64,000 nucleotides of DNA from Penicillus capitatus (GCA_965649825.1 OZ287699.1:186001-250000); one strand, 5' to 3'. Numbered from the stretch's first letter, positions 1-33,061 are shown. The notes: generated by a model from the sequence alone, not told the origin. A program made the numbers and translations.

Positions 1-530
1 CACGACGTCTCTGTCAACCGACTTGCCACAGAGGAATGTTGACCTGGCACGGAATTGTGTCAGTCGGTCGTTTGACCTTTCACTTTTAACCGAATCGGAA
101 TGGCTCTTGTGGCCTGAAGCCGCTAAAAATGTTCGATCGATCAGGCTCGATGTCTGTTTACATGATCGTCTTGATACGACCGAATTACGGCGCCGCCGTC
201 ACGCGAAAAAGACGACCCGGCGCACGATCTTAGGTCACCACAAAGAGAAGTCGATATTCAAAAATCCAAGAAGCTGCCTGACCGTGCTTCTGTATGAAAC
301 GCAGTTCTGAACATGCGAGAAGAGCAACCTCTCCTTCATTACGTATATCATCTATGCTACCAAGACACCCAGGTGGACTCAACAGCACACTGTTGGCAAC
401 AAAGCGGATATTTAAGCTCCAAGTCAACGCAGTGAAACTGCTGCTACCGTGCACGTCGCAAACAGTCCTGCCTTGGAGCCGTCACATCATTGAGAAGTCA
501 AGAACAAGTGCTTAAGCATGAACGGGTTCA
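1..530 (+). pseudogene. Family X copy 1 (partial/degenerate, runs off left edge), upstream of protease-ANK P1
   Basis: nt 1-190 align by eye with 28310-28490. Shared translated blocks TCHRG[M/I]LT (21-44 vs 28329-28352) and CLH.R. The splice acceptor used in the 28 kb copy is mutated here. End coordinate is a guess. Confidence 0.35.
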
Positions 531-879
531 TTGAGAAAGACTCAACGACGATGAGATTGTACAGAACGCAATGCATCAGAAATCCATTCGAACAACGCAC
601 ATCGAAATGCGTATTCAGTTCTCTCAGACGAAGAGGCAAGACAAATATCCACGATGCCTTCAATCACCGTATCATCACCTAGTCTCACTCTAAGCAACGA
701 CTCGTGAACGGGACAACGATGTTGGCGTCGTTGCTTGTCGTAAACGCAGAGTGGCGTATCGAATGATACTGCCGAATCTGTTAATTGTGGCATCAGAAAA
801 CCATCTCCCTGCGCCAACAAGAGCAGCAGATTTGCATTCGAGCCAGCGTGTTCGCGTACATCCACCGGCCATCCGTCGA

Positions 880-3659: not shown

Positions 3660-3707
3660 GGCATGGATTCTGGTTTTTAACACGGTCCGATGGATTCGGG
3701 TTTTCAG

Positions 3708-4190
3708 ATGATGATGGAGTATATTATTGAAGACGACAAGGCAGTGGCCGATGCCATTCTGCAAATTGACCTGAATGCAATGCGGTGCCTGAGAAAGATC
3801 GTTTACACAGCGCGTTTTTGCTCACAGAAGCGAAACGTTAGTGATGTGGACAATGGTATTGAGCGCGTGTTTATGTGAGAATCCTCAAAAGGAGCCCGTT
3901 CTGATGCCGCCGACGCCGCTGGCCAAACGCCACTAGATTGGGCAGTTGGGACGGTGGATCGTGGCAGGTATCTATCAGCCGCGACGCAATGCTCTCGAAC
4001 AGTATGGCTCAGATGTCTATCACTACCGTCACGTCAAAATCGCGTAAAAACCGGCACGAAGGACACCCTTGGTCAACGTCTGTGCTTCGATCGCTCCATG
4101 TTCCGACGACACGCGTTCGGCTATCAATGAGCTTTCGATACCACAAGGAAATCCCAACATCTCAGATGTCTGTGATTCTGACGAGAGAGA
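3708..4190 (+). pseudogene. Decayed ankyrin tail of P1
   Basis: MMEYIIEDDKAVADAIL and SETLVMWTMVLSACLC match the N-cap of the P2/P3 ANK module. GARSDAADAAGQTPLDWA is one ANK repeat. RTPLVNVCASIAPCSDDTRSAINEL matches the P2 C-cap. The pieces lie in different frames. Confidence 0.7.
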
Positions 4191-4512: not shown

Positions 4513-6054
4513 ATGAACGAAACGGACACCGAAGATGTGGCTTCGCGTCTGTCGAGGCGCATTTCGCGCTTCGCCGAACGTTTTCTTAGCGGCAACGGCG
4601 AAAGCCACACCATTAACTACGCCTACACCCTTCGAACGAAGCCCCTGTCCGGACTCTACACAGTAACCCGTCCTGGGACCATCAAGCCTCTTCGTGACTA
4701 TGCGCGTCTCAGTGCTGTATACACAGAGACCTCTTGAACGGTGTCCCCGGAAAATTCTTCTCCGACTCCTTTATCATCGCCGGCCACGAATGGTGCATTC
4801 CCCTACCTTGTGCCTTTCTCGGCGAGCGTACGGTTCGTAGGCGTATCGCTGTGGAGGCCATCAGCGAGCACCTCTCCCTTTTTCTCGTCTCGCTCGATCC
4901 GCAGCCCGTGGAAGTATCCTGTACATTCGATATTGTGAATCTCTTGGATTGTTCTAAGATCATCAGTAAAGGTGAGGTAGACCATTTCGCATGCCACGTC
5001 ACATCAGATTCTGTAGGAGGGCGCAAAGTGATAGGGCCTGCAGGCGGAATGGGTTTCCTCAAGATCTGCTCCGTCAATGATCTCGCGACGCCGGAGAACG
5101 GTTTCCTCCGAGAAGATGGTTTCTTTATCATCGAGTTGAGACTCGGCCTCGTCTCGTCGATGGTCGAAAACTTCACCATCGATGCGGACGAAAGCACGTG
5201 CATCAGTGTGGTAAGCAAGAAGGCAGATGTCGCATCGATCGGAGGCCATCGTGCGTTTCAGTGGAAGCTGCGGTGTCTGAAGGAGATGGACTATGCCGAT
5301 ATCATCACGAACGACATCAGCACTGCCCAGGCGACTTGGTAGGATCCACCTCGACGGTCCGAAAACGATCGAACAGTGCAGAGGGATGCATATAGGCGTT
5401 TGAAACTCGAGCCTCTAAGATCGGCCGAGAAAGGGGATGTCTATGGCGCACATCTCTGCTGTACAACAGACGTTGTTACCGACGCCAAGTTTACTTTTTC
5501 GGTGCTCAATGTTCATGACGAGAAACGAAGCATCACACGAGGTGCGCAGCATAGCTGGCATTGCCTTCTGACGGAGGGGGCCCTTTGCCCATACGACAGA
5601 GTTTCTCTGCAAGTTTCCTTTGGGTGAGTCGAGTTGGGGCTGGAGCGATTTTGCCGAGATGTCTATGATTCACGATCCCAGATTTGGATTCCTTGAGGAA
5701 GGCTGGATCACCTTCATCGCTCGGATCTCCGTCATCAACGTTCGGCCGTTACGCCGCAGAGTAAACGCACCTAACCATGGACACTTCCGCCATCTGTTGC
5801 CGATACAGACGCTGAGGCAGAGGCGTCCGAAACACTTGTGCGTTGTCTGTATGTCTAAGGAACAGACCTCTGGATTCGTCCACGGCAAAACGTAAGTCCT
5901 TACGGCGGCAGTTATCGGATTCTCGGCTGCGATTGTGGTGTCTAGATCGCACAAGTGTGTCTGCGCCGAGTGTTGTGAACTGCTCTTCAAGAGAAATGCT
6001 GGATGCCCAGTTTGCCGAGCCAAAGTGGATTCCATCGTTCTTCACTATTTCTAG
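4513..6054 (+). CDS. MATH-A: tandem MATH (TRAF-like) domains + C-terminal MDM2-type C2H2C4 RING
   Basis: Splices into an intact frame with MATH motifs (FIIAGHEWRI, SLFLV, WGWSDF, GFLEEGWITF) and CVVCMSKEQTSGFVHGKTSHKCVCAECCELLFKRNAGCPVCRAKVDSIVLHYF*. Confidence 0.85.
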
Positions 6055-6867
6055 AACGTGCTTTTTCACTGACCGGCTCGTTTTTGTTCGATTGACATAT
6101 TCGTGACTGCGAATGCAATGGCTGTCGACATTCTTTGCAGTTTCTGATCGCAGTGACTGACTGACGGAACCATTGCTTGCCGACGCCAATAGATGAACTT
6201 CTGTCTCATTTTTCTTTTGTTCTGCCAAGTCTCGTGCGTCATCGGCCGCTATGCCAAGCACAACGCTGCGCGCCAATGCATGCCACGGCATTGATGCAGG
6301 ATGTGTACGTTTGTTTAAGTGGGAAAGCGATACGACGACACGAGAGGCTGACGAAGCACGCATCCCGAAAACGGCGTACTGTATCGAAATGTCGCGTGCG
6401 ATCGTGATCGCACGTGTCCATCGGCGTACGACCATCGCCACCTCGACGTCCAATCGAACGTCTGCATCAAGTATGCTGCTCTATCGCATGCGTACCGAAA
6501 ACGCAACGCACGAGATGTGCCCCGTCGCTGTCGAACAGCATGGGAGAGAGAGCGGATCCGCCGTACACAGATCGTCGCTCGCGATCGGTCGAGCGCTTAG
6601 CGTCGACATCGTCGTCTTAGGTCGACAGCAATCTATCTCAGTTAGATGCCGAGATGGCGGCGGTTCAGCCGTTGGAGTGTTCGTTTTTGTGCCTAACCGT
6701 CACAGTCACCATCGTGCATGTCTTTTCTCATTTCCTCCTTTCTTCGACGAGGCCGACAGCAGTTTCCCCATACCCATCGAAGGCAGCGGGCTTTACTTGT
6801 CTTCTCATCTCACGTTTCTGTATTCTTCACACCGAGCGCCGTTCTCTTTCTAATGTACCTTGCATAA

Positions 6868-8437
6868 ATGAACGAAGCAACAACCGCAGGTGTAGCTGCT
6901 TCCTCACAAGACACATCCCTTTATCGCACGTGCAGATGGGTGCGGTATCAACAACGGCGTCAACTACTCCTACACGCTCCAGACGCGACACATGTCAGGG
7001 AAATACGAAGTGCGTGAGAAATGGAAGCCACTGGAACATGCGCTTTTTTCTAATATGCACATTTTTTGACAGTGTCACATCCATCGATGCTTTCTCGACA
7101 GACCTGTTAACGAATTCCTATCAGATCCATTCACCACTGCCGGATATCAATGGTGCGATCGCCCTATCCACTATCTCTCACATACTGTCTGTTTATTGGC
7201 AAGGCGGCTCAGATTGAGTAACGCTGACGGAGAGATCTTCGTTTTCTTGGTGCTCATGAGCAGAGCGTTGGAAGACACGCACTACCGATTTACGCTGGTC
7301 AATCATGTGGATTCCGCAAAGAGTATCACCAAAGGTCATCTCTACCGCGATGCCTGCTCGATGCGATCGTGGTCTGTCGGCAGGGTGGAAAGGGATCCTT
7401 GGATCGGGAACAGCCAAGGGATACAGTCTTTTTCTCGCAGCTGGCGGCGTGCAGGATCCGAATGTCGGTTATCTACTGAGCGACGCCTTCACCGTAGAGG
7501 TCCGCATCGGACGCGTGCTGCCACAAAACAAGAGCCTGCGAATCGAGTCCTGTGGAGAAACGTGTATCTGCACCGTAAGGACCGGACCGAGTATCGCGTA
7601 CGCGAAGACATGTGGTGCTTGGTTGCTGTTAGTGGAGACTACGAGATCTTGTCGACTTCCAGTTTTCAGATCTGATCCTGGACGATGTCCAAATCGGCAG
7701 GACGATCTGGTAGGCCAACCAGTCCATCTCTCCTAGCAATGCTCAGCGATGCGATGATGGTGCAGGAATGTTAAACTCGAGCCGAATAAATCATCAGAAA
7801 AGGGGAGAGACACCTGTGGCGTCTACTTCTATGGTAAATGCTTGTACCCGACCGAAGTGAGTTTGAACATGACGCTGCTCAACTGCTGCGATGCATTGGA
7901 GAGCAGGTCCAAAGGTATGGACGTCACTTCATCGTCGATGGTCGCTATGTTAAACTATGTGGCTGCAGAGCTCGCTTGTGTCTATGCCGAGGGCCGTTCG
8001 TGTCGCGGATGGCGTGATTTCATTGAAATGCAAGCACTCTTCGATCCAAAACTGGGATTTCTTGATGATGGATGGCTCACGCTAACCGTCATTCTTACCG
8101 CCGCCAGGAGCGTAAATCGAATAGAATCCTGGAGATATTGTATACCGGCTTTGCAGTCGGCGAAGAAGCTGGCGATAGAACAAGCTGCATCACAAAGAGT
8201 GAACGAGCCTCTTTGTGTCGTGTGCCTCGTTAAGAAGCAGACGTCTGGATTCATCCATGGAAAGACGTGAGCCATGTGGATGAATCGAGGCCATGGCTGA
8301 CGGTTCGTCGGTGATTGGTGTTCGTTAGGTCACACAAGTGTGTCTGTGCGGATTGTTGTCGAATACTACATGAAGAGAGAGCCAGATGTCCCGTTTGTGC
8401 CGCCAAAGTGGATGCCATCATCATCGGCGACTCCTAA
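6868..8437 (+). CDS. MATH-B: MATH-MATH + MDM2-type RING
   Basis: Same exon structure as MATH-A. FTTAGYQWRL, RGWRDF, GFLDDGWLTL; RING CVVCLVKKQTSGFIHGKTSHKCVCADCC...CPVCAAKV...GDS*. Confidence 0.85.
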
Positions 8438-9109
8438 CAAGCCTCATTCGACATCGACATCGACGATGACGACCGCCGCCGCCGCCATTCGACACGATAT
8501 ATAATCATTAAGAATGATTTTTCATTTTTGAAAGCACCACCGTCTGAATGTTGGATGCATTCGGGCATGTATGTGCCTCCTTTGACTATGATATAACGTT
8601 GTGCGGTGTAAACACTGTATGAAGTGCCCCAAAGCTCACGCGTTCACGCGCAGTGATGGAACCTTCTCTGCTGATGGTCCTCATTTCGCAATAGAAGCCG
8701 TTTTCTGTGTCTTAAATGCGTGTATCATTCGTGCGCTCTACTAAAAACAAGTAGAATCAAACAAACACGTGTGAATGCATCCTAGTCTCTCTCTACGGAC
8801 AATGCGTCTCTGTCGAGGCTATGAAGTGAGCAAACGGATGTTCGGTGCGATATGAATTTAATTCGTAGACAGGCGCTCAAAGTGGACGATGAGGATCAGA
8901 CCTCGTCGTTTCTATCCAACTAAACACGTATGCGCGAGTAATTTTTCGCCGTTCGTCATTTAGACTCGACGCGGAGCCTAACTAGAGCTCACTCATCTAA
9001 ATGAAGTCCTCTCAACGAGCGTGGCCATTCGATCACCATATTCTAAGGTTCTGGTAGATCACAACGAGAGTAGGTATCTGCACGGAATGCTGTGAGATGC
9101 TTGCTGTAC

Positions 9110-9830
9110 GGGAATGCATTCGTATGGTATGGGCTGCGCTTCTGTGTCGAAGATCCGCGCAGGTACGTCTCAGTTACGACATGTAGATGACAGGGACGTC
9201 TGCCTCCGCTGGCGACCTTGCCTATCGGATACCTCCGTCGCGATCACGGAACTGCAAACGAAATGGTTTTCTGCTCCGAACGACGACACATCCGCGTGCG
9301 TCTTTCCGGAATGACGCAAAATCTGTGACGACAGTGGAAGTCCTGACAGCGACTTACGAAGCATCGCGATGCATTGATGACTGCGTCAGCATTTATCTTC
9401 GTGGATGGCGATCAAACCCCGTGACGCACGCACCGCAATCGTCTGGCACAAAAATCCAGAACCATAACGTATCACCTTACTGGATCACCGCCCGACAATA
9501 GAAGGCATACGTCGTGTTAAATACCACCATCAGCAAGTGGATCCGTATGATGCCCAGACGCCCGATTCTTTGCTGCCGTCGAAACTGCAGCATCGACGAT
9601 CGGCAGAAAAATAAACGAGATCTGCTGTGCTTTCTCTATATCTCATGAGGTTTGCTCTTCGAAAGCATGCGTTTGTCATCGAGAGTGTACGACAAAAATC
9701 GATCTGTCTGACATACAATCCTGCTGTCGTTGTGTATCTTATGACACCGTGGATCTGGCAGTCGCTGTCACGACACGAGCACCTCGTAACTGCTCCGCGC
9801 TTTATGATAAAAACAGAGACGCGAAGGTAG
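9110..9830 (+). pseudogene. Family X copy 2 (frameshifted), upstream of P2
   Basis: Blocks FVDGD (9398-9412), W.KN, ILCCRRNC (9571) and KHAFVI..VRQ correspond to the 28-30 kb copy, but lie in different frames with stops. Confidence 0.4.
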
Positions 9831-10555
9831 CGAGGCGACGACGTGTCCGCAAGACAGAAGACAAAACCCTAAGGTATGTGACGAGGATGCGTGGTTGGGC
9901 GTTTCGCCGAAAACGCAGCTCAGAAACGCCTCACGCTCGTCTCATGTCTTCATCTGTCTCCTTGCCGAACGACGATCTGCGTGCGCTTCATGCGATGCAC
10001 GATACACAACACAAGGCGTCCTTTGCGTCATTGTCGCCAACCGGACACCACGCTCTCGCACAGTTCGCTCGCTGACCTGCCTCGCCACGCAGCGCGTCGT
10101 CATTCTGAGTTGTCGACGGTCGCATAGACGTGCGCCGAACGAATGAAGGAAACAAGGCACAGTCAGGAATTCACATTTTTGTCTAGGATGGATGATCCAG
10201 CGAGGATTCTATATGACGACCTTTCTTCGTCGGCTCCTGGGCGAAATTGAGCGAACGGGCGAAAGTCGTCGTTCCGTATTGCCGCTGTCGACACCACGTC
10301 TGTACTTTGGCAGTCTAGGCCGCGTATGCGCCCGTGTGCGCTTCACGATGATTTCCGTCAATGGGTAAGAAAATCGACAGAGTTTATTCGTACACCCGTC
10401 GTCACGACATAGAATCGGCAAATCGAAGGAGTATAAATGGGAGTCAAAGCAGAGACATTCCGTGTGCTTCCTGCTCAGTAAGAGTGCCATCGGATTCTGG
10501 CAGACGTTTCAAACATCTTTGTCCTGCTAAGCGGTCGCGCTGTGTGAAGAGTACG

Positions 10556-13691: not shown

Positions 13692-13999
13692 AGGGTGCAG
13701 CATCCATCTCAAGCAATGATGCATTCCAAGTACCTAATAAGCTTTTGTCAAGTGTATTGTCTCGACTAGCAGAGACCGAAATGAAAATCCAGTTTGGTTC
13801 AAAGGAAGTATAGACGAATTAAGAAGACAGGATATATTGTTTGCGAGATTGTGGCTGTTGCGTATACCGTTCAACTCGTGGCCGCTCGAGCGTGATGTCT
13901 GCTAGTCACACCACTACACCATCTGATCAAGGACGACGCGCAGTGCGTTGATCCAAACGTCGTGGTGCTCTGTTATAAGCCATTCTCTCGTCTGTTTGC

Positions 14000-15595
14000 G
14001 ACATGGCGTCTGTGGCCATGAAACGGAATCGATCAAAGCGTGTTGCGTTCGTCAGAGGGTGGAGATTTTTAAGATTCTTATCCCTTTGTGTTAAGATCGA
14101 CCTGCGTCTATTCGCTTTTCTTTTATACGAGCATGGGATTGCCTGAGCTTGGATGGTGTCTGTACAGTTTATGTTTCTCTTCGGAGACGTCTTACTGTTC
14201 AAAGCTGTTTCAAGAGCGGCGTCAGATGCCGTTGATTTGTTACCTTTTGAGGGTACGGCCGAGAAGAGTGGAGGGTGCATTGGGGAGAATAAATTGTTGT
14301 CGCTTTTCGAGATTCTGTACTAGATCGTCCGTCCTTTTCGCATTTAGTTTTGGTAACAGAAGGGCAATGTAGGATACAACTGTACGAGACCAATCACGCG
14401 AAGAGTGTTTTCATCCATTGTCTGTCAAGTCCAAGAATTCATCCAATGAAGAAACGGTCGTTGCGCAGAGGCAGGCAGACATGCATTGTTAGGTGACGGA
14501 CTGTGATGGAGAGCTAGCTGCGGCTTGTGCTTTTTCAGAATGGATGGTGCTGGTTGTTATGATCGGCAGAGGGAAAGGTGGGTGTGTGTCATCATGATGT
14601 GACGTCTGCCGTACGGATACAGCGTCCGACACTCGCGCATCTGATCGGTCCATAATGACCCATTGGTGATGGATAACTCTCGACACTGTTCGAAAGAGTC
14701 TGACGTTCGAATGCCCGCATGCTGCCAATGGTTGCTAGCAAGCGGGATCCGCAGACGTCTTTGACGATCATGGCTGCAAAACAGAAGAGGCAGTGCATCT
14801 GTGTCGCGCTGTCCTGGATACAAATCAGCCTAACGTACCTTCGATGCGCAAGACGGGTGGATGACTTTGAAGAGGGAGGGTGTCTTCGGACAGTCGACTC
14901 CACCGGTACAAGCCTGAGATAGGATGACCTACCTGTGTAAAGATCTTTCTTGACTCTGGAAAACGTCGCTTTGTGAAGAACGGTTTGCTATCTTTCCGAT
15001 ATCTCAGCTGCGTCCGTCCACCTGTCCCATCATTTGACGCGACGTTCTTCTGTGTCTGTCGTGTTCGTTCTCTACAGGTCGATGAAAGGATTTTATTGAA
15101 CGATGGTGGTGTCGTCTGAATGATATTAATTGAATATTCGCCCACCAGTTTTGACTGCTTTATGTTTTCGGGAGTTTCTTAAGATTCAAGGAATTCACCT
15201 CTCACGGAGTTATCCTTTGGATCGTCAACGGCTGTCACGGCTTTTCATTCGCGTTAGCTGTGGATCTACCTCGGCAGATGTTGATATACTTGGATAAAGG
15301 ATCAGCACAATGAGAGCTTTACGGTTGCGCTTATGGCTTTGTCAACATCATGACAAACAATCGATACCTTCGAGCTCTTTCTTTATCTTGCCTTTGATTG
15401 TTTATCTTTCGGGCTGCTCTCAGTTGTTTGTCAAGTTCTATAGTGGAGGATCTCGTGGTCTGGCGACAAATCTCCGTCTCTAATCCAATAAGCGGCCGAT
15501 ACCTGCTTAAGATAATGAGGAGTGTCGACATGCTTTCATTGTCTCATCTTTTGCTTATTAACGACGTTTGGGTGTCCTACCGACCTGATCACTGA
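14000..15595 (+). CDS. Family X copy 3, upstream of P3 (unknown function; exon structure unresolved)
   Basis: SGKRRFVKN (14955-14981) and LVVWRQISV (15452-15478) match DGRRRFVNN and VFVVRQINV of copy 4. Confidence 0.4.
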
Positions 15596-18547: not shown

Positions 18548-18848
18548 GACAGATCTCTCCAGCTCCAACGACGAACCCGTACCTCTTTATGTCGCCGTAT
18601 TGACTGACGTAGCTAGTCCTCTGCGAAGAAAGGAATCCATGTTATCGATCTTAACCGTTGATGTCGATGTCGCATCGACGACTCTCCTCCGAAGTGACGT
18701 TCTTTTAACCGCTCGATCACGCTGCGTACGACTTTCTGCTACAGAAGAGATTTCGAAGTGCTGCGTCATCTACGTCGTCGCGGTTTCGCATCTCGGTCAC
18801 CGCCGCCACGACCCTCCCTTTCTTCGTGTTTACAGCCGCTTTCCGTGA

Positions 18849-20337
18849 ATGGACGCAGCAACGACCGCAAGTGCGTTACCTCCTTCGCGCACCGCGTCGA
18901 GTCTCTCGCTGACGATTCAGGCGGCAGCGGGTCAAGCAATGGCGTGAACTATGCATACACTCTCCAGACAAAACGACTCTCCGGACGATACGAAGTGAGC
19001 AGACGCCACGACGACGATGCTTTCCTGACTTAGTGCCCTCGACAGTGTCACATTCACAGATATCTATTAGATTCAGAAACTACAGAATTCATGACGGACG
19101 CGTTCTCCGTCGCAGGATTTCGGTGGTGCGTTGCGCATTTCGTCTCGAGGCTCCCGCCGTCTTATCTCCACATCTTCTCTCAGGCAGCTTCTTGTGAATA
19201 TCAAGAATAGAAGGATCGTCATGTACCTCAAGTCATCCGACGCTGAACCTGTGGAGGTTCGCTTCAACGTTCAGTTGACAAATCAATTGGACTGGTCCAA
19301 AACCATGAGTGGAGGTCCTATCAAGCATCTACTCTAAGCTCGTGTTGCATTCGAGCGCGTGCCAGGAACGCGTCGAGTATTCGAGCCAGGGTCGCTGTGG
19401 GGGTTTGAGGGGAAAGAGAACTCGGCATCTGATGTGCGAGATCCGAATGCTGGTTACATGGAGAAGGGTTGCTTCACCGTCGGACTGAACATCAGTCTGG
19501 TCTCTTCACTGAACGAGAACCTCATCGTCAGCACCCAAGGGAATCCGTGCGTCATCACCGTAAGCCTGTCAAACGTCTGAAGTCGTGTCAGATGGGAGGG
19601 CGGTTGCAGTGGCAGCTGCGCGATTTGAAGGAGATGGTGGATTCGAAGATCTACTCTGATGAAATCCGCACGGCAAATGCCACATGGTGAACACCTGTCC
19701 TGTCTGTCGGCGATCCGTTAAGACAGACGCGTTCGGTGCAGGAAGCTAAAGCTCGTGCATTTCGAGACGAACAAGGGGGGAGGTTTTTATGGTATCTATC
19801 TCGTCTGCACAGGCTCCTGTGCGACGCAAGTCAAGCTCAGAGTGCGAGTGCTCAACCACCGCACCGAGAAGCGCAGCATCACCAAAGGTCCCCGTCTCTT
19901 GCTGTTGCACCGTGCTGACGGAGAGTGATGGCGTAGAGCTTGCGCGCAGATTCGAAAAGGGCACTTCGAATTGGGGCTGGCATCATTTCATGGAAACGAC
20001 AGTGCTGCGAGACGAAGGATTAGGATTCATTGAAGACGGATGGTCGACTCTAATCGCCTGCCTCTCGTTCAAAGAAATCAAGGACAAAACGCAGACCGCA
20101 ATGGCGGAACAACTCCAAGCACGGGCACCAGTGATGGAAAAGCACGCAATGCTGACAGGGGGAAACGAGACCGGGACGACGAAGATGGACGACGCCTCAG
20201 TGCACGGCGAACTGAAAATCGCTGGCATGTGTCGCAGAAAGTGCCTTTGCCCACTCTCCTGGTTGGCTCTTATTAAGATAGCACTTGCAGGAATCGGAAA
20301 GGAGCTGGTGCTAAGGATGGCGGCACGCCCCGCGTGA
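18849..20337 (+). CDS. MATH-C: MATH-MATH protein without a recognisable RING
   Basis: Same exon layout as MATH-A/B (MDAATTA|SG..NGVNYAY; FSVAGFRW; WGWHHF; GFIEDGW). The C-terminal tail is unrelated. Confidence 0.8.
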
Positions 20338-21120: not shown

Positions 21121-21951
21121 TGTTGGTCCGCTGGGCGATCAAGCGAAGAAGTTTTTGGCGACGGTTTGAAGGCCGTCAGAAATGGTCGCTTGAACGTGAA
21201 GAAGCTCTCAGCGACGGTTAAGAGAGCGCTTGAGAGGTTCGCGAAGTGGCCGAAGTGGGGTGAAAGACGAGTCTGTAATAAGACGTGAAAGGCGTGAATT
21301 GGCAAGTATCCAGAGTTCGAGTCTGGATGACGTGCATTCTTGGCGTATTCGGAAAAATGTTACTGTCATCTGTGAGCACTTAGACACTCGCCAGAAATCT
21401 CAGAAACTGGCAGAATTCGATGATTGCTGAGGACGCAGCGACGTCGAGTTTAGCGCTGCAAATGACCTGCGAGGTGCAGGTGACGTCGAGTTCTGAGCCG
21501 AAAGTCCGAGGCGACGGACGATGCTGTAACCCTGAGTAACCAGCCTGGATTACAGAAAAAGCGAGGAAAGCGTGGCAGTCAGTTGACGTGATGAAATGGA
21601 CAGTCAACGCGCTGAAAAGAAGACGCAGCCTGTGGTAAAAGCCTGAAGATGCAGCGTCGCAATGAGGTGAGGACATGAAATCAGGGTGTCGCCAAGACGC
21701 GACGCAAGACGTGAATTCAGTGTGTAACTAAGAAAAACGCAAATGAAACGGAGAACATGGGCATGTAAGACAAAAACTTTAGGGGCAAGTTTCGGTTTAA
21801 AAGCTTTCGGTGTTGCGTGCAAATTCTGTCGATCGAGTCGCTTTGCGTTGCTGACGACTCAAGCGTAATTCCGCTGCCGTGCTGACGATTTTGGCCTGTT
21901 TTTCAGTGCCAATTCTGCCCCATCGTCGCATAGTACTGCAGAAAACCAACA
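21121..21951 (+). mobile_element. 5' LTR (about 831 bp) of a truncated Ty3/gypsy-like retrotransposon
   Basis: Terminal inverted ends TGTTGG...CCAACA, immediately followed by a PBS-like 12-mer and the element ORF. The left boundary rests only on the TGTTGG match. No second LTR in the window. Confidence 0.6.
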
Positions 21952-21963
21952 TGGTTTCGGAGC
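21952..21963 (+). promoter_or_regulatory. Primer-binding-site-like sequence TGGTTTCGGAGC
   Basis: Two mismatches from the canonical tRNA-iMet PBS TGGTATCAGAGC; directly abuts the LTR-terminal CA. Confidence 0.6.
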
Positions 21964-21971
21964 GAGCCAAG

Positions 21972-23460
21972 ATGGCTCATGTGTGCCTTTGTTTCTGGCT
22001 ATGTTTTGCACTTGTCTCATGCGTGAGAACGAGAAGTGGTACCTCGACAGAACCCAATCTGTCGCAGGAAAATCGCGAGTTGAGAGAGCAACTCGAACTG
22101 TTAAAAGAGGAGATTCAGCAGCTCGGACAGCCTAAGACTAGTTCTGAGGCTACTGGATCGAAGTGGTTTCGTTGGGCATGGTCATTGGTAACAAGGACTA
22201 AAGTTCCACCGCTCGAATTTCCGGAGGACGATCAGGACGAGGTGGTTCCAGAGGAAGACGAAGCGAATGATGAAGCGGAAGCGTCATGTGATGGCGTATT
22301 TTCCTGCTCTGCATCACTCGGTAGTCAGATTTGGAGGACTTGTCGTTTCTTTTTCCCCCAAATCTGGATACTGATGACGCGTCAGACATTCTGGGTGTCC
22401 CAGATGAATCAGTCGTGCGTCGAACTGGTGTTCGTGTGGAAATAGGATGCGGCGCAAGTGGTTGGTTTAATGTTAGCCATTGCGTTTATCGCGTGTCTTG
22501 TCAATGCTGTTGCGTCCTTGGCGCTCGTGGTGTGGGAGGGGCGTCTTGGGTCGGTATTCCAGCGTTTTTCAAAGAAGTTGTCGCTTTTGGTCCTCATACT
22601 CAAGTTCAAATCACCAGGTTGAGAATGAGGTGAAGAAAAGTGTGCAAGAAGAGTTGGCCAAGGGTGGTCAAGCTCACGCTGTTGCAGCTGTCAATCAAGA
22701 CGCTAATCAGCGAGCTGTACCGCAGAATTCAACTATACTTTGTTTCAAATGTGGCAAGCCAGGCCATATTTCGAGAAATTGTCCTACCTGGAGAAACAAG
22801 TTTCAAGCTCAAGTTGAGGCGTCACGTGCGCAAGAGCAATTTGTGAGGCCTGCGCCAAGGCAACGAAGAGACGAACGTGTTCAAGTGCCGTCGGATATAG
22901 CTATTTCGCCTGAAGTCGTTAGAGCGAGCCAGCTTAAGCTGCCGACTCAGACTCAGGTGGAAGCAATGAATAACGTCGAACAAGCAGAAGCAGGAACTCA
23001 AATGAAGGCTCCCGCGTTTTTGGGACCAAAGGGTGTGAAATGTGTTTTGATAATTGATACTGGAAGTTCGGTGAATGTGATGCCTGAAGTGCGCGTCAAG
23101 AAGATGGGCCTGAGTGTTAATGCGGATTTGGCGCCAGGACAAACTCATCTTAAAGCGGTTAACGGAGGGATCGCGAGGGTCTTGGGTATCCTGAATTTGA
23201 GGGTAAAGCTGGGAGCGTGGGAGGCCGAAGTACCTTTCTATGTAGCAAGAGGTGTGTCCCACGTCATTCTGGGAGTGCTGGGATTGAGTGCAATGGCCGT
23301 CACGATAGATCCGGCAAATGACAGGCTTGTCAAGGGGACGGATGCATTGCTGTGTGATGGGTATCAGGATCATCCACCAGCATACCACCTAGTTGATGTT
23401 GCCGGATACGACCTGCGAGATGCACAGCCCTCAAGTTCGCACCCAAATGCGTCCCAGTGA
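21972..23460 (+). mobile_element. Gypsy-like gag/protease region (frameshifted; RT, RNase H and integrase absent)
   Basis: Zinc knuckle CFKCGKPGHISRNC; retropepsin LIIDTGSSVNVM...LKAVNG...VILG. No introns. Confidence 0.9.
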
Positions 23461-23579
23461 TCACCTAGTTAAAGCACATTCCTAGTTTTTCTTTAAAGTT
23501 TAAGTCTGGAAGGACATCGCTTTGTTGTGGATCGCCACTCGTCATTAGCCAAAATGACGTGGTGACGCGGAAGTTACCT

Positions 23580-24690
23580 TTTTGCCTGGAATGTATTTCT
23601 TATTGTTCTGTATTTCCAAAATTATCGACTCCGGGTCTGTTGATGTCGTTTGGCTTTCAGAGAAAGGTGAAATCTCTGTTCGCATTTGGAATAGTGGACG
23701 TGTCTCGCAATTTGTCGCACATAAGACAATCGTCCTAGAAGTTTATTCATGTATGTGTCCTGTGTTGCTTTCCAAGTCGTCGGCAAAATGACGAATCTTG
23801 TTTTTGAGCGTAGTTTTGTTGCAAAGCAGTGTATTCAGTTTCTCGATGATTTCGTCATGGCATAAGCTTCTTTGCGGAAGTTGTTCTATTTGTCCGAATT
23901 TGTCGTATTCGGAGGCTATTGTCTCTCTGAGAGGTGTGACGTACGTTTCTAGTTGTCTCGCTGGGAGGGTCAGCTGTGGTGCTTGTATTGCAAGAGGGAG
24001 TTTCAGCGATCGAAGGAGGAGCTCTGCACGTGGTTCTCTCACACCTAACATGCTGATGATGGTCTCTGTTGGAGTGGTCTTGAGGGTACCGGCAATAAGA
24101 CAACTAGCGTTCATGTACATTCTGGTGGTTGTTTGCATTCTTGTCATTGATCGAAGTCCCGTGTGCATCCAGATTTCGGAGCTGTAGAGGAGACCACTGA
24201 GGGCGCACGATTTGACCACTAAGTGGGTAACCCACGGTTCGGTACCCCACAACGTCCGTGTTACTTGTCAGATAATGGTGAGGCGCCTGTTTTCCCTGGA
24301 GGCGGCTTCGGATGCGTGAATATGAAATCCCAGTTTGGTATCGACTGTGAGGCCTAGGTAGCGGCAGGTAGGAGACTCGTGGAGGAGAGTTCCATTGAAA
24401 AGGAGGAAAACAGGGGGAGAATTCCGGAGTCGACTGAGCTTTACCAACTTGCATTTTCGTTCGTTGATTGTCATGTGTTTTTCGGCAGCTCAGTTTCCAG
24501 CTTGCGTAGAATGTTTTGGATCTGGCTGAGGTCTTTGAATGTTTTCTGCAAAGGGGCACTTAGGAGAAGATCATCTGCGAACATCGTGAGTTCGCTGGGG
24601 AAGTAATCTGATCTGCTGCATCGTTGATGAAGCAGATGAATCAGGGAAAAGGGCGATCCCTGTGGCAATCCAAGCGTCGGTTACACTTGG
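23580..24690 (-). mobile_element. 5'-truncated, decayed non-LTR (LINE) retrotransposon, RT C-terminal half
   Basis: GLPQGS, MFADD, YLGLTVDTKL, GLLYSSEIW and IAGTLKTTPT spread over three frames. Boundaries approximate. Confidence 0.85.
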
Positions 24691-25574: not shown

Positions 25575-25800
25575 TCAAAAGTAGGTGATGATCACGGACG
25601 GCATCCATATCGATGCCCCGTTCAGGCAACCGGAATCCTTTATGTGGAGCAATTTGCAGCAGTCAAGGCAGACGCGTCTGTTCGATCTACAGTCGACAAC
25701 CTCAGACATGAAGAGCAGTGTGATTAGCAAACTCACATTTTTCTGCTAAACATACCAGACGTCTATTTTTCTGCGAGACAGATGACCTTCTTCTTCGCCA
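25575..25800 (-). pseudogene. Decayed MDM2-type RING exons of MATH-D
   Basis: KVICLAEK*TSG (TAG at 25763-25765 where MATH-A/B have Gln) and last exon SNRRVCLDCCKLL...GCLNG...VIITYF*, homologous to the MATH-A terminus. Confidence 0.75.
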
Positions 25801-27179
25801 CAGTGTGGCTTTGAAATCTGCACCGCCAACAGCAACATGGACCGTCGTGAGCTGGCTTCTTCGGCGAGGGAGTATTCCTTGCGATTCTTGAACGAAAAGC
25901 GCACAGCAAAAGTGATCCACTCGTCATCCAGGAAGCCAAGCACGGGATCACTGAGATCAGGCATGTCCACAAAACTCGGCCAGCCTCTGCTGGAATCACC
26001 CGGGGTGAACTTGTGTGCGAGCTCTTCACCATCGGCATTTTGAGATGTCAGTGGGGCAAAGGAGAAGGCAGACACCTTTGGTCACGCATTGTGTCTCGTC
26101 CAGGTGGTTAACAAGAGTGACACTGAAGCCAATCTCAGCGGTGCTGTGGCTGGAACACACGAGAAAGATGCCCCATCTGTCGTCTCCTGTGATGGATGTC
26201 GTACGCTTGAGCTTCAGATTCCTGCGCAACGACACATACACCATTGCTCAGTCGGAAAGCGGGAGTGCAACGAGCGATCACACCATGTCGTGCCTGCCAT
26301 TTTAATATCGTCAGATATGATATCCGAGAAACCGATCTCTCTCAGGCGACGCAGTTTCCACTAAAAACAGTCCTCAGTACACGAGTGTGGCCTCATCGAG
26401 AGGTAAACTGTGGCCGTGTAGGATCCGAAAGTGCAAAAGACGAGGTTCTGGTTATCGGGCGGAATGATGCCGATGTTCAGCACGACGATCAGGCAGTTCT
26501 CCAGCAGGTAGCCTGCCTCAGGATCGCCGACGTCCGCGGCAGAGATGACGTCGCAGTGACCCCAGGTACCTCCCGGTCTAAGCATCTTTCGCCATCCTTC
26601 CAGACGGGGACATGTAAGAGATGACGAGGCACGGAGTGAGAGGCCATTCACCTCGCGTCACACTTTTCGTCGAGTCCAAAGGATTGATGAGTTTGAATTT
26701 GTAGTGCACGTCCACGGGCTCTCCGCTGCCGACCAGTGCCAAGAACAGACAGATTTCCCCCTGTCTGTTCTTCACCCTGAGCCTCCTGTCGAAGACATCG
26801 GAATGGGCTTCAGGGAGATGGCGAAAGCGTCGGCCCGTACCACTTGCGTCCGGCGACGGTGAACAGGCCGGACTGGAATTCCTCGACGTTTGCGTCTAAG
26901 AAGTCTCTATGAATGCGACACTGCCGCCGCGAATGCCGTGTTCGCGTCCCCCGACTGATGGTTAGCTCACTTCGTATCGGCCGGACCGGTTGTCTGTCAG
27001 AAGGCTGCAGGAATAGTTCACGCCGTTGCTTGTGCCCGTCCCGTTGCTTCTCTTTCGCACTCCCTCCGCCTTTCCTGTATTACTCTCCTCCGCCTTTGTC
27101 AAGGACAAGTCTTCAGGGAGCAGCAGTACGGGTTCCGTTTGCTTACCACTCTAGGGCGTTGTGTGTAGGCGTTGCCCAT
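25746..27179 (-). CDS. MATH-D: MATH-MATH protein with N-terminal MGNAYT; RING out of frame
   Basis: NGVNYSC..SGRYE|CRIHRDFL, FTVAGRKW, RGWPSF, GFLDDEWITF; same intron positions as the other MATH genes. Confidence 0.8.
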
Positions 27180-27949: not shown

Positions 27950-29854
27950 TGGAGTCTCTATTTATTGCTTCGATCGCAGCATCCCATCAGTATTGTCTAT
28001 CGCATCAGACTGTCATCTTTCCGATCCCTCGTCACCAATGTGACTATCATGGTTCCGCACCATAAGGAGTTCACACTGTCAAACGTCCAGAATGGCCCCG
28101 AGGACAGGGACAGACGACGCGCTGTAGATGCCAGTGCAAGTAGCACGGTTGTTGGAAGAGTTCGCCACAACATAAAGAGAACCTCGTGGCTGATGACACA
28201 GACCTCTTCCGGAACATGCGCCAGCAGCGACGTCGCATCTGGAGAGGGGCTCAGCCGCGGTCAATCGCGCGTTCCTCGTGCAGCAACGTCGCTTCTTCGA
28301 ACAAACGCCGCGATGTCTCTCTCGACGGACTTGCCACAGAGGAATCCTGACGAGGTACAGAATTGTGTCAGTCAGCCGTTTACCTCTCACTCTTGATCGA
28401 ATCGGAATGGCTCCTGCAGTCCGAAGGTCCCCTATCAGTGTCTGCATGTTCGTCATGCCGACGCCGCTTCACTTATCTTCGTCAAGTAAGTAAGTATTTA
28501 CGGCTTAAGGCCGAAGCGACGTTTGTCATAGCGTCGAGCCTGCGTCGCGAGAGGTCTTGATCCGTCGCCGAACAAACCAACCCACTTTCAAAACCATCCG
28601 TCAACAGCATTCGGATGCTGTACGTATCTCGAATTGTCGCGGTCCATACCACTAGCATCCTTGCTTTCGCGCAGCGACTGACTAGATCGATTGACAGCGC
28701 TCGTCACTGTTTCTTCAGAAACTTCGTTACGTTCAGCTGAGTTACTTCTTCTGGTGTCTAGCTTTACCGAGATGCGTGTGCTCGGCTTCTCCGGTGACAT
28801 TCACGGCACGTTCGCTTTCAGCGGTGAGCGGTCTGAAAGGACCCGTCTGACGCAGAGAAAGGCGGAAACTCGATTCGAGTGAGATACCGACGACTGTTCT
28901 GTCCTTGAGCTTCTCGGAGATCGTTATCGCCCTTCGTGCATCGACCGACGAGGCAGTTCTACCAAGTGCGAATTGCGCAGCACACACACTGCCGTCTCCG
29001 CTGCCGTGATCGCACTCCGTCGAATACGGGCTGCGTCGTCTGCCTTTTTTCCTAGCGTATAAAGCGAACGGGTTAGTAGAATGCGAACAGCCTCTCTCGT
29101 CTCACTCTCTGCCGAAAAGTCATTGTGCAGCTCTCGTTCGTCGACGGAGACGCTCTCGCCGAGTTCTGGAAAGAGAACAGAGACGGACGACGTCGATTTG
29201 TCAATAATCTCTCTGTCGCAGTTCTCTTGGCGGATATCAAGACCACGGATCTTTCATTGTGGCCAGCGTCTGCGGAATTTACCTCCGTATCACCTGCGAA
29301 CGCCGAAAACTGTTGCAACGTGTGCTTGGTGACGTGCAGTGTGGACAGTTATTATTTGTTCTATCCGTGAATCTCTGTTTCCCGCGATCGGGCAATCGCA
29401 CATGACGAACAGCTTTATTTGAAACGTGAAGCCTAAAAGAGCGAGAAGTCCCGAATCCTAAAGCGTCGTCCGAACGCTCGTCAGTTGCTTGGGCGAAGAA
29501 AAGAGCCATGGAAAACAAGGGGCACGTTTCTTTCTTGATGTCGACGAGTGGCAAGTTGTCTGCTGCAGACCGTGCCAGTTAGCGAATGACCAATTTTTTG
29601 AATGCGTTCGTTCCATCTCACCCCTCACTACAGCAGGGGGCATTAGAAGGAATAGCCGAGTGGTGTGATGTCTGCAAACAAAGCACGCGTCTATGTGCAT
29701 GAAATATGCGGTGTTTGTCGTCCGGCAGATCAACGTATTCTCCCGACTCTTTGCTCCGACCGCATGCTTTAGGGGATTGGAGCATTTATCTACCTCCAGA
29801 CTGAAGCGAGAATACCTCTCTGATATAACGATCACATCTCTAACCTATATTTGA
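27950..29854 (+). CDS. Family X copy 4, upstream of P4 (multi-exon, unknown function, possibly LRR/solenoid-like)
   Basis: GT-AG introns join plausible exons (TCHRGILT|SPKVPYQCLHVRH..|NVEPASREVLIRR; LSFVDGDALAEFWKENRDGRRRFVNN; VVCCRPC; VFVVRQINVFSRLF..FRGLEHL). Synonymous third-position differences against other copies support the + strand. Confidence 0.45.
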
Positions 29855-30222: not shown

Positions 30223-32334
30223 ATGTCTGAACTTTCTTCCTGCACTAGACGTCCGCCTCCTTCGGAAAAAGTGGAGTCACTGCTGACAAGGCTGTGGCTG
30301 ACGCTGCTGCTGTTCGCACCGAATCCTTCACACGGCAGCTCAGGTATAGACGATACCGATATCCCGTCCGACGGCAAGTGATCGTCATGCTGTAGACTAT
30401 AGCGACCTGAACCCGCCGTTGACACGCGTCACCGAACAGAACGTCGCATCCCTGTGCCCTCAAGGTCTCGAGGCCAACGCGACGAACCGTCACTGTTGCC
30501 CTCAAGGCAAGCGCGCAGGCGAAAGCAGATTCCCGTACGTATGCAGCGTCCGGAAGGCGGGAACGCGAAAACACCTTTGTACGGCCACACTCGTCCACCG
30601 TAAATGGCTTCTGACGACGGCGCACTGCGTCGACCCTAACAGCGACGACTCCGCCGGCTGCTACCCCCTCATCTACTGCAGCAGTCCCGTCGCCAACGCA
30701 CCGGCCGAGGAGCAGGTGAGCAGTTTCCCTTGAAAGCGACCTCTCGCACAAAGATCCGACCGATCGTGCAGGTTTTCCACGTCGTCGATGCCTACCTGCA
30801 TGAGGATTGGTTCGGCGACGCCGCCTATGGGTCCAACGTCGCCATGCTGAAGCTGGACCGCAATGCGAACTACCCCATTCCGCGGTTCTTCCGCGAATGG
30901 ATGTTCGAAGGCGCAACCATGGACGTTCCGCTGTCTCGCTGGGTCGCCGAGGGCAAATCTTCGCGCAAGTGTGGCTGCTGCAGCTGCGAGGTCAAGAATC
31001 GCAACAACGACGCCTGTCAGAAGTACCCGCAGATCGTATCCAAGAGAAGCTGGCTGTGTGTCGACGGCGGAGAGACCGACAACTGGACAGGTGGACTGAG
31101 AAGCTGAAGGTCGCTTCTTCTGTTCAGGCTTCGACGCTTGCGCTTTCTAGGGGAAAAGGGAAGTCCTGTTTTGCTGGCCGATCGACCGAAGGGCAAGCTG
31201 GCGAAAGGAAATCCCAGCGAGGATCTGCTGGTCGGTTTCATGTCCTTCAGCACTTCCGATTCAGAGGGCAAGACTTGTGCTGTGTACACCAGTGTTTCCT
31301 TCTTCAGGACCTGGATCATGAAAACGATTGGAGGCAAAACGAAACCGAGTCGCTGCATGTTTGTGCCGAAGGCCGAGCCCAAGAAAGAACCTCATGACCA
31401 AAAGGATCAGGAAAAACCAGCGGCAGGCACTCAAGTAGAATCCTTAAAAACGCAGTTCCCATGTGTTGTTGTCATATGTGGCATTTTCTTCTTGGATATA
31501 GCTGACGCTTAATTTGACTCGAAAGAGAATTTCGTGCAATGTAGGTTGGAGTAGCAAAAGAAGAACCTACAGCGTCAGAGAAGAGCGAGAAGCAGACTGA
31601 AGAGGTGTCCGCCCCAGAAGCAAAGAGCAAGTCAGAGGATGAACAGCTGATCAGCGAGTTCAGAAGCCTCACCAAAGAACAGCAGATCCAAGTAGCCCGT
31701 TCTCACTCTTGAAGCCCTTTGATGTATGCGTCGAGTTCTCAGAGGATGGTCGACGCTATCAAGGCCGACGATAATAAAACAGCCAGAGCACTTCTTACAG
31801 CAGGATTGGATCCGAATACAGAGAGAGGCGACCGTGAACTTCGGCTTTCTGAGGATTCCAGGCTTCCCCACTGGGCCGCCCGCCTTAACGCTTCTGAATG
31901 CGCCGAGGTAATCTCGCCTCTACTGCTGTCCAGACATGCTCAGTGCATCCAAATCCTCCGCGAAGCGATGACGAGTGGATTTCTGTGCAGGCTTTGTTGG
32001 AGAGCGGCAGCGACGTTGACGCCTCCGACGCAAACAAAATGACGGCGCTCCTTTTTGCATCTTATTTCGGGCACCTCAATGTTGTAAAGGTGACTTCTAG
32101 AACAGTTCTTCGCTTGATATCTCACGCTTCGTTTAATAATAGGTTCTCTTGAAGCACAGCGTGAACGTGGAGGCTTCGGACCCGAACGGACATAGCTCAC
32201 TTCTTCTGGCGGCTAACAACAGGCAGACTGACGTCGTAAAGGTATCCTGAAAACAACTTCTGATATTAGCCGCACGACAGCTTGATGACTAGGTCCTTTT
32301 GGAAAACAAAGCCAACGTCAACTCCACAGACTAA
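30223..32334 (+). CDS. P4: signal peptide + trypsin-like pseudoprotease (Ser->Lys) + ankyrin repeats truncated by premature TAA
   Basis: LLTRLWLTLLLFAP; WLLTTAHC; NVAMLKL (Asp position is Asn); spliced DNWT-GEKGSPVL; TAA at 32332-32334 in the third 99-nt ANK exon. Confidence 0.8.
31610..32097 (+). repeat. 488-bp near-identical tract, copy 2 (partner at 17271-17758)
   Basis: Direct sequence comparison. Confidence 0.95.
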
Positions 32335-33061
32335 AATGGACGTACCGCACTTCATCTGCGACGACTGTCCGGGATCTCGATACCGTTAAGGTGGCATCTA
32401 AAACAGCCCTTGGCTTGTTGCTTTCACGATTTATGCAACAGATTCTTTTGGAGCACCATATAAACGTGGATGCTGTCGACAATATCGGACACACAGCACT
32501 TCACGAAGCATCTGCTCACGGGTCCGCCGACATCGCGAAGGTGACATCCAGACCACCACTTCCTGACATCTGTCGTATCATCGATCCATGAACAGGCCCT
32601 TTTAAAAGACGGTGCTTCTGTCGACATCCGTGATGGCGACGGGATGACAGCACTGTTCCATGTGTCTATGTCTGGAAAGATAGACGTGGCGAAGGCGAGC
32701 GTATATTTATTTTTCTCATTCCGACGGTTTGTTTCAGGTCCTTCTGTCTTCGAGGGCATCAAAAACTCTCCAAGACAATGATGGATACACTACAGCCCAA
32801 GTTGTGTGCAAGCACTGCTCCTTTTGTCCCGATAAAGGATGTCAAGCTCTCGCCGAGCTCTTGCCTGTCGGCGAGATGGTGAGGGGACGGCGTCATCCTG
32901 GGGTCGTGATGGATCAGGCGGAGGATAAATCGACTGAGGGGACTGTCTGGCTGGCGATGGGTGCACGCCGCCATGGGGCGCTTAGGGTCTTGTCAGAGGA
33001 GGTCTCAGGTGTGGTGGGGGCTCTGGGGGGCTCGGGTTCTCTGGTCCTGGGCGAGGGATGA
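32335..33061 (+). pseudogene. Remaining ANK exons of P4 downstream of the stop, plus unrelated G-rich extension
   Basis: 1-nt deletion after the TAA; two further 99-nt exons and a C-cap homologous to P3; the frame then runs on into unrelated sequence. Confidence 0.7.

Follow-up and report, generated by a model that had tools for sequence, protein, structure and literature searches.

Clusters of clip-domain serine proteases and their homologs serve clotting, melanisation and Toll activation in arthropods, and in their tandem mix of active and dead copies the dead ones are kept by selection. Nematodes and grasses have rapidly evolving MATH-BTB arrays, in which, as in the SPOP/BPM adaptors, the BTB domain recruits cullin-3. 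In the Bryopsidales the body is one giant cell, in which wounds have to be closed and microbes kept in check with no cell boundaries to help, and next to nothing is known of its defences at the molecular level. Here a gene cluster is described from Penicillus capitatus, in a stretch of 64,000 nucleotides (GCA_965649825.1 OZ287699.1:186001-250000; hereafter the window) that holds the cluster between about 1 and 33 kb. It is built of S1 protease genes with C-terminal ankyrin repeats (family P) and of genes for proteins with two MATH domains and, in some copies, a C-terminal RING (family M). For this cluster the analysis establishes how the genes are built, which domains and catalytic residues they have, under which selection regimes they evolve, their synteny with a second species and the footprints that block duplication left. 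It is probably a lineage-specific tandem array that arose from two neighbouring, mutually unrelated genes, one P and one M, which were repeatedly duplicated in blocks, inverted, subjected to gene conversion and in part lost to decay, the linkage of the two families being passive.

Family P resembles the arthropod clusters in its chymotrypsin fold with predicted secretion and in the tandem mix of active and dead copies, but it has neither a clip domain nor the canonical Ile-Val-Gly-Gly activation site, carries ankyrin repeats at the C-terminus instead and belongs to another kingdom. Family M shares with the MATH-BTB arrays the USP7/SPOP-type MATH domain, tandem birth-and-death and the union of a conserved ligase-coupling module with fast MATH domains, whereas a direct C-terminal RING takes the place of BTB and each protein has two MATH domains. 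With the RING of MDM2/MDM4 it has in common the motifs CV[VI]C, VHGKTxH and KRNxxCPVCR and the IVLxYF tail; unlike MDM2/MDM4, it lacks the p53-binding, acidic and RanBP2-zinc-finger regions, begins with MATH-MATH and is found in a green alga, and we know of no description of an MDM2-type RING outside animals. In TRAF and TRIM37 proteins, too, one polypeptide carries both a RING and a MATH/TRAF-C fold, yet in M the RING stands last, TRAF zinc fingers, coiled coil and B-box are missing, and the MATH domains are nearer to USP7/SPOP than to TRAF-C.

The S1 (PA clan) expansion of Ostreobium and other Bryopsidales involves the same subfamily as P, and there too signal peptides are common and tandem arrays occur. 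The Ostreobium genome was reported to hold 159-189 S1 peptidase genes, about 40% of them with signal peptides, and the expansion was attributed to external protein degradation (10.1101/2020.07.21.211367). That report gives gene counts only and describes neither the ankyrin fusion, nor dead members, nor a link with MATH-RING genes (10.1101/2020.07.21.211367); the predicted P proteins add the ankyrin fusion and retained pseudo-enzymes to this known expansion. As the original prediction had stated, there is no description of the combination of protease-ankyrin and MATH-RING genes in the literature that was searched.

Protease-ankyrin and MATH-MATH(-RING) genes

Positions are counted from the first letter of the window, negative ones lying on the upstream contig. 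The window is identical to part of ctg340523 (1.58 Mb) of the long-read metagenome assembly ERZ25074695 in ENA, from which the upstream sequence was taken; another contig of the same sample, ctg335946, is its haplotig (98.5-99.3% identical), the divergence of the haplotypes outside exons being 1.27%. The DNA is eukaryotic and nuclear, with about 52% G+C and very short GT-AG introns (mostly 46-56 bp, a few 83-136 bp), and the alga is similar in G+C and in heterozygosity to Ostreobium (52.4% and 1.29%, respectively; 10.1101/2020.07.21.211367). All gene models are our predictions from DNA, and those of MB, MC and the 3' part of P1 are uncertain. P3 was modelled by hand, and a small dynamic-programming gene finder independently gave the same model; the remaining genes were obtained by paralog-guided local dynamic programming followed by hand curation. 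Gene finding from codon bias alone was rejected, since its signal was too weak and either chained whole-window models resulted or most genes were missed. The models are backed by open frames in both haplotypes and in a related species (ENA ERZ26696514, contigs ctg303740 and ctg303645), and the order of protease, linker, ankyrin repeats and Cys-rich tail recurs in single open reading frames (ORFs) of transcript-like contigs and in annotated proteins of other Bryopsidales. Paralogy was established from all-against-all blastp of ORFs, tblastx and Pfam domains at gathering cut-offs, and catalytic positions were fixed by alignment to kallikrein-6.

From upstream to downstream, the cluster starts with a gene for MATH, a USP7-type ubiquitin-like (UBL) region and an MDM2-like RING, followed by M0 (-), the spacer copy X0, P0 (-), a MATH relic (-) and X1; then come P1, MA, MB, a gap of 2.1 kb, P2, a gap of 2.2 kb, P3 and MC; and finally 5 kb of transposon debris, MD (-), X4, P4 and, 18 kb further, ME (Table 1). 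The original prediction had placed an element X before a protease-ankyrin gene four times on the plus strand; blastp, tblastx and Pfam bear out the four S1 genes, while X occurs at two of these sites and is non-coding. The MATH-MATH genes that it had placed behind P1 (MA, MB) and P3 (MC), and the divergent MATH gene before P4 (MD), agree with the coordinates and Pfam domains found here, whereas ME had been missed, as had the leftward extension of the cluster beyond the window, where the MATH relic, P0 as the fifth protease-ankyrin gene and M0 as the sixth of the MATH genes are found. The distance from P3 to MC is 113 bp (about 110-200 bp from the stop codon of P3 to the start of MC) and that from P1 to MA about 380 bp; P2 has no MATH neighbour, and no protease or ankyrin match was found near ME.

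The Trypsin domain (Pfam PF00089) scores 55.5, 61.6, 84.6 and 58.9 bits in P1, P2, P3 and P4 (cut-off 20.6), the alignment of P3 with kallikrein-6 runs from one end to the other (E 1e-15), and the usual disulfide cysteines of the chymotrypsin fold are kept. A P protein is composed of a signal-peptide-like N-terminus, the S1 domain, a charged linker rich in K, E and P, whose length differs strongly among copies, ankyrin repeats and a Cys-rich tail. The proposed protease-ankyrin fusion was found in P2, P3 and P4, where the repeats follow the protease in the same spliced frame (Ank_2 174-239 bits, E 1e-51 to 5e-72), one repeat per 99-bp exon and 5-7 repeats per copy; it fails for P1, in which the ankyrin region is vestigial, the first segment and the last capping repeat only (about 3690-4130) being seen in translation with no Pfam match. 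P1 has a K/E/P-rich linker and tail of about 380 aa, with tandem repeats at 2741-2954. P2 carries about 7 repeats between its charged linker and Cys-rich C-terminal tail, and P3, with introns of 46-136 bp, has 5-6. In P4 the ankyrin exon at 32293-32391 contains an in-frame TAA and a frameshift and must be skipped, as expected from the pseudogenised part that had been noticed before, and there is a GC donor at 32695. The N-termini are the most hydrophobic segments of the P proteins (e.g., KLWLCLLFSAP) and resemble signal peptides, assigned by eye and hydropathy only; the proteins have no internal membrane helix and would be secreted.

The copies differ in their catalytic residues, as had been foreseen. 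The His57-Asp102-Ser195 triad is intact in P1 (His, Asp, Ser; motif GESAHP) and in P3 (His, Asp, Ser; GESGSP), which also has Asp at position 189, so that both are probably active enzymes. It reads His, Asp, Ala in P2 (DGAGNP), His, Asn, Lys in P4 (GEKGSP) and again His, Asn, Lys in P0, and on these residues the latter three are predicted to be catalytically dead.

The longest intron of each P gene in the window lies directly after the protease domain (2080-2198, 11730-11833, 17064-17199 and 31435-31544). If retained, it would provide 24-44 in-frame codons leading to a hydrophobic stretch and a stop, e.g., ...FPCVVVICGIFFLDIADA before the stop in P4. A short isoform made of the protease alone and ending in a hydrophobic or glycosylphosphatidylinositol-like tail is conceivable, but the pattern could be chance. 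A membrane helix hidden in this intron was considered and rejected, since the read-through frames reach stops and there is no usable downstream donor.

In family M, MATH_2 (PF22486) scores 62.8 bits in MA, 37.0 in MB, 52.6 in MC, 63.7 in MD and 73.1 in ME (cut-off 32), with two such stretches reported in MA, MD and ME, and MATH (PF00917) is found in addition in MC (24.4 bits) and MD (41.3 bits); the closest solved domains are those of USP7 (E 1.5e-9) and SPOP. The RING (zf-C3HC4_3, cut-off 27) reaches 33.6 bits in MA, with the full MDM2-like zinc-ligand pattern, and 25 bits, just below the cut-off, in MB, where the ligand pattern and the MDM2-like motif are intact. Both RINGs (5815-6054 and 8190-8437) end in the MDM2/MDM4-type C-terminal tail (IVLHYF in MA), and 54 residues, the last one of the protein included, align with MDM2 without a gap (E 5e-12; RINGs of IAP proteins, E 4e-4). 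RING integrity varies among copies, in line with what had been noticed before: the remnant in MD (25626-25786) has a stop codon in its first half and has lost CPxC, the RING of M0 is broken as well and M0 shows 2 stops, tblastn revealed no RING remnant in MC, and ME is likewise without RING. M proteins have neither a signal peptide nor an internal membrane helix, and those with intact RINGs are putative RING E3 ligases. No relative of a whole M protein outside this organism was found in searches of about 5.8 billion proteins (none with MA; the MATH profile recovered only a fragment from this organism itself). As predicted from these genes, M is a fast-evolving, lineage-restricted family of RING ligases.

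About 11.8-13.2 kb upstream of the window (L002 17458-18918, minus strand) lies the gene, mentioned above, that combines MATH, a USP7-type UBL (ICP0-binding) region and an MDM2-like RING (CVICFTRPRTVGFVHG...) with no USP catalytic domain. It stands at the left edge of the cluster, adjoins ClpB and may represent the conserved progenitor of the MATH-MATH-RING family.

Selection, duplication history and relatives

In the comparison of the two haplotypes no frameshift or stop was found in P1, MA, MB or P2. The allelic changes, which are small counts, are 10 synonymous and 17 non-synonymous in P1, 6 and 2 in MA, 3 and 17 in MB, and 2 and 1 in P2. The second species has a colinear cluster at 75-81% DNA identity, in the order M, M, P1, MA, MB, P2, P3, MC and then an NB-ARC-TPR gene; a P4-like locus, adjoined by another NB-ARC fragment, lies on its ctg303645. 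The NB-ARC and TPR genes are located at L006 17526-20492 (minus strand, after MC), with more than 1,890 aa in essentially one ORF, and at L009 13866-16106 (minus strand, after the P4-like gene). NB-ARC-TPR genes occur only in the cluster version of the second species: neither NB-ARC nor TPR was matched in the window and the 14.6 kb upstream of it, so that this cluster is not of the NLR/STAND type in the window. At the site of the transposon debris that follows MC in the window (21855-24559), the second species has no counterpart of the debris and carries the NB-ARC-TPR gene.

Against these orthologs, with synonymous distances of 0.3-1.1 that are partly saturated, the ratio of non-synonymous to synonymous rates (omega) of the protease domain is 0.16-0.23 in all four P genes of the window, dead P2 and P4 included (P1 0.23, at 85% aa identity; P2 0.23; P3 0.17; P4 0.16). 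The dead states are common to both species, P2 having Ala at position 195 and P4 Asn with Lys in the window and Met in the ortholog (His-Asn-Met), and the dead protease domains are under purifying selection. The ankyrin domains show higher values of 0.41-0.50 (P2 0.43), as do the MATH regions, with about 0.4 (MA 0.39, MB 0.42), while the RINGs are the most constrained part with 0.05-0.10 (MA 0.05, MB 0.10). MC is 85% identical in aa to its ortholog with an omega of 0.18, and the pair of MD and M0 gives 0.5. With P1, MA, MB and P2 free of frameshifts and stops in either haplotype, the genes are considered functional and not debris.

The older copies of both families are related in a star-like manner, with 48-54% aa identity among the proteases and 29-39% among the MATH proteins. 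More recent events left clear footprints. P0 and P4 are 88-94% identical over about 1.6-1.9 kb, and M0 with X0 matches MD with X4 at 85-87% as one direct block, intergenic DNA included, relative to which P0 is inverted; the MATH gene and the spacer were thus copied together, and the protease copy was inverted relative to them. Because spacer DNA was copied along with the adjoining MATH gene, block duplication produced at least part of the P-M pairing. In addition, about 480 bp of P4 (31609-32090), from the end of the linker through the first ankyrin exons with their introns, agree with P3 17270-17750 at about 99%, compared with 65-84% over the remainder of the two genes; such a tract, introns included, points to recent gene conversion. 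The protease domains of P0 and P4 differ by 8 synonymous and 3 non-synonymous changes, counts that are again small and weak as evidence of selection, since the introns are about 100% identical and thus point to gene conversion here too. The birth-and-death character proposed for this cluster of protease, repeat and MATH-RING genes is upheld, with retained pseudo-enzymes and fast-evolving binding domains.

For relatives elsewhere, a protease profile built from exact exon translations of the window was searched against about 1.84 billion representative proteins, and only 181 matches were obtained at E <= 0.001. Trypsin with Ank is found in 22 of the 40 longer matches, which makes it the commonest architecture among full-length relatives; these relatives show clear signal peptides, and all named close ones belong to Bryopsidales (Ostreobium quekettii, Caulerpa lentillifera and Bryopsis sp. 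KO-2023). The protease-ankyrin fusion is, as judged from these sequences, an order-wide family of Bryopsidales. A word-indexed protein search with P3 residues 1-340 returned one distant Ostreobium protein only, and a scan of JGI metagenomes with the protease profile only two unrelated high-GC trypsin contigs. The algal origin suggested for the window is supported by these relatives and by its other genes, which are of ordinary kinds, such as those for a trehalase, for a starch synthase and for a nuclear-encoded PsaE precursor whose transit peptide is short.

In Bryopsis a single 7.4-Mb scaffold holds six genes of Trypsin-Ank type together with a double-trypsin gene (BSKO_04754), and both Bryopsis loci that were retrieved contain Trypsin-Ank genes in tandem. 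Homologs from O. quekettii reach only about 30-40% identity and contain far longer introns, so that the alga of the window represents another lineage of Bryopsidales. In one of these homologs, P0056, protease and ankyrin are separated by a membrane helix, and another, P0028 (L010), is a fusion of S1 with a triple protein-kinase region (1,572 aa); the two suggest that several receptor-like architectures of the order carry the S1 domain as their extracellular head. The homologous genes of O. quekettii span 5-19 kb, compared with introns of about 50 bp and genes a few hundred bp apart in the alga of the window, a striking difference of compaction within one order. In six Bryopsis and O. quekettii loci (168 kb) tblastn with all six M proteins gave no MATH match. 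The linkage of P and M is therefore common to the close relative and is not seen in the distant relatives sampled, so that on this small sample the combination, seen linked only in the close relative, does not look like an operon-like conserved module.

Spacer X and the features of the window

Table 1. Features of the P/M cluster in the window and of the sequences between its genes.
Feature	Position	Strand	Description
X1	1..109 (full copy -118..109)	none	right part of the non-coding spacer of about 228 bp, between the MATH relic (-) and P1
P1	880..about 4130	+	exons 880-1341, 1405-2079, 2199-about 3343; Pfam Trypsin E 9e-15
MA	4513..6054	+	MATH-MATH-RING, 440 aa, 5 exons
MB	6473..8437	+	MATH-MATH-RING, 486 aa, 7 exons; N-terminal model uncertain
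P2	10556..13691	+	predicted S1 pseudo-protease with ankyrin; Pfam Trypsin E 1e-16, Ank_2 E 6e-52
P3	15897..18547	+	658 aa, 12 exons, best-modelled copy; Pfam Trypsin E 1e-23, Ank_2 E 6e-72
MC	18661..20276	+	MATH-MATH without RING; model of first MATH domain imperfect
Transposon debris	21855..24559	mixed	gag/aspartyl-protease ORF of a long terminal repeat (LTR) retrotransposon and a second ORF
MD	25575..27179	-	MATH-MATH, decayed RING; divergent from P4
X4	28190..28416	none	non-coding spacer repeat (core), in the interval from MD to P4
P4	30223..33061	+	predicted S1 pseudo-protease with ankyrin, one ankyrin exon decayed
ME	51797..53126	+	solitary MATH-MATH without RING

The third component of the supposed cassette, family X, was discarded as a coding gene, and only two families are left. 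X is a non-coding repeat with 80-83% identity among X1, X4 and the upstream X0 (within the window alone, 3-109 against 28311-28416, 83%); none of the reading frames is free of stops in all three copies, and X is present at only two of the four claimed sites. At the other two (8440-10556 and 13692-15896) nothing related to X or shared between them was detected (tblastx with word size 2, best E 0.04-0.6; blastn with word size 7), and the ORFs there have no Pfam domain. X4 belongs to a larger block (28074-29200) that is 85% identical to the spacer beside P0 and M0. X was rejected as a structured RNA or tRNA, as no Rfam or ARAGORN match was obtained anywhere in the window, and its core was rejected as a specially conserved regulatory element, since at the orthologous site of the related species X is only 71-73% identical, no better than the flanking DNA.

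The transposon insertion that had been noted is confirmed by the ORF at 22477-23457 (+), in which Pfam finds zf-CCHC (zinc knuckle), Asp_protease_2 and gag-asp_proteas, i.e., the gag/aspartyl protease of an LTR retrotransposon. The second ORF of the debris (23746-24267, -) has no Pfam match, and a LINE-like origin would be a guess only. At about 8541, between MB and P2, the other haplotype carries an insertion of 2.5 kb (L001 13692-16168) with a 538-aa ORF on the minus strand and no Pfam match, a presence/absence polymorphism. Elsewhere in the window, the strongest coding signal belongs to a gene of about 1,490 aa at 41931-46770 (-), with repeats of the polymorphic-membrane-protein type, a Cys-rich region and membrane helices. 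An ORF of 407 aa at 54396-55616 (-) is gag-like by eye and shows no similarity to the ORF at 22477-23457 in a self-comparison of the window.

Origin and possible roles of the pairing

In the preferred reading, that of passive linkage, a local P/M pair would have been multiplied by block duplication and then reshaped by loss, inversion, conversion and transposon insertion, and P and M would be neighbours by descent and not by joint work. The sampled Bryopsis and O. quekettii arrays without MATH genes make the pairing look like block duplication of such a local pair. The P proteins would enter the secretory pathway, with the ankyrin domain as a fast-evolving surface for binding partners, and P2, P4 and P0, which lost catalytic residues and yet are kept by selection, would most likely be non-catalytic binding or regulatory proteins. 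M would act as a cytosolic ubiquitin ligase: its pair of USP7/SPOP-type MATH domains would recognise short motifs in substrates and its C-terminal RING would recruit the E2, the conserved aromatic tail supporting dimerisation by analogy with MDM2. Since P has signal peptides and M has none, a functional coupling of the two is topologically awkward. Several observations weigh against passive linkage: the pairing is colinear in two species, the gaps from P to M are very short, a common spacer lies between divergent M and P genes in three units and would fit shared regulation, NB-ARC-TPR genes stand inside the cluster of the second species, and the selection pattern, in which the catalytic module is conserved, the binding domains change fast and pseudo-enzymes are retained, is that of conflict-related families. 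Moreover, the distant comparison covers six loci, only three of them with ankyrin-fused protease genes, which is a small sample.

These points would be accommodated if P and M formed a functional surveillance module of innate immunity or wound response, in which active and dead P proteins act as sensors and decoys, MATH reads the state of P through linkers or ankyrin domains, the RING ubiquitinates P or downstream targets and paired duplication diversifies matched specificities; we regard this as unlikely. The joint action of sensor/decoy protease, repeat scaffold and ubiquitin ligase that the original prediction had put forward is weakened by the block-duplication footprint, by the contrast of signal-peptide-like N-termini in P with their absence in M, by the sampled arrays without MATH genes and by the unpaired P2 and ME. 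The pairing does recur in at least five units (P1-MA/MB, P3-MC, MD-P4, P0-M0 and the MATH relic with P1) and is kept in the second species, the dead proteases have been held by purifying selection since before the species split, omega of MATH and ankyrin domains is about 2-8 times that of RING and protease domains, and the excess of non-synonymous allelic differences in MB (17 vs 3) and the NB-ARC-TPR genes point in the same direction. A helix placed as in P0056 would even bring the ankyrin domain into the cytosol, but the P proteins of the window have no such helix and would be wholly lumenal or secreted while M is cytosolic; besides, the recent duplicates arose by copying of MATH gene and spacer as a single block, P2 and ME are unpaired, three of the six MATH genes are without a working RING, and the S1-ankyrin arrays sampled in Bryopsis and O. 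quekettii have no MATH gene beside them. Tandem arrays without MATH genes in Bryopsis, with the signal peptides throughout the family, would suit a large secreted S1 repertoire that endolithic and siphonous green algae use for external protein digestion, as proposed for the S1 expansion of Ostreobium (10.1101/2020.07.21.211367), with ankyrin as a substrate- or matrix-binding appendage and M as unrelated ligases of housekeeping type. This explanation is also rather improbable, as three of the five P genes are dead yet conserved, unlike genes for bulk digestion, and M is lineage-restricted and fast-evolving, unlike housekeeping genes. That the cluster is mostly a graveyard of decaying duplicates without current function is very unlikely and is largely refuted by the selection data: the decayed ankyrin exon and GC donor of P4, the broken RINGs of MD and M0 (the latter with 2 stops), the MATH relic upstream of P1 and the transposon insertions are set against modelled exons that stay open in both haplotypes as well as in the second species, omega of 0.05-0.23 in protease and RING domains, and the 8 synonymous vs 3 non-synonymous changes between the protease domains of P0 and P4.

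It is a bolder and quite improbable idea that P and M are co-evolving partners in the surveillance of a giant single-celled body, active and decoy proteases, secreted or bound to membranes, reporting wounding or attack by microbes. Were it true, the matched MATH-RING ligases, with the NB-ARC-TPR genes of the second species, would transduce or limit the signal, and the cluster would be a protease-plus-ubiquitin immune locus without a counterpart described in plants or animals. Under a cautious reading, what may be a plain segmental duplication should not be taken for an "immune cassette". The cluster nevertheless brings to light two undescribed architectures, an order-wide secreted S1 (pseudo-)protease with ankyrin repeats and a double MATH with an MDM2-type RING that is so far confined to this lineage. 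With dead copies and RING constrained and the presumed binding domains evolving fast, it is a reasonable place to seek recognition or proteolytic-signalling systems of algae.

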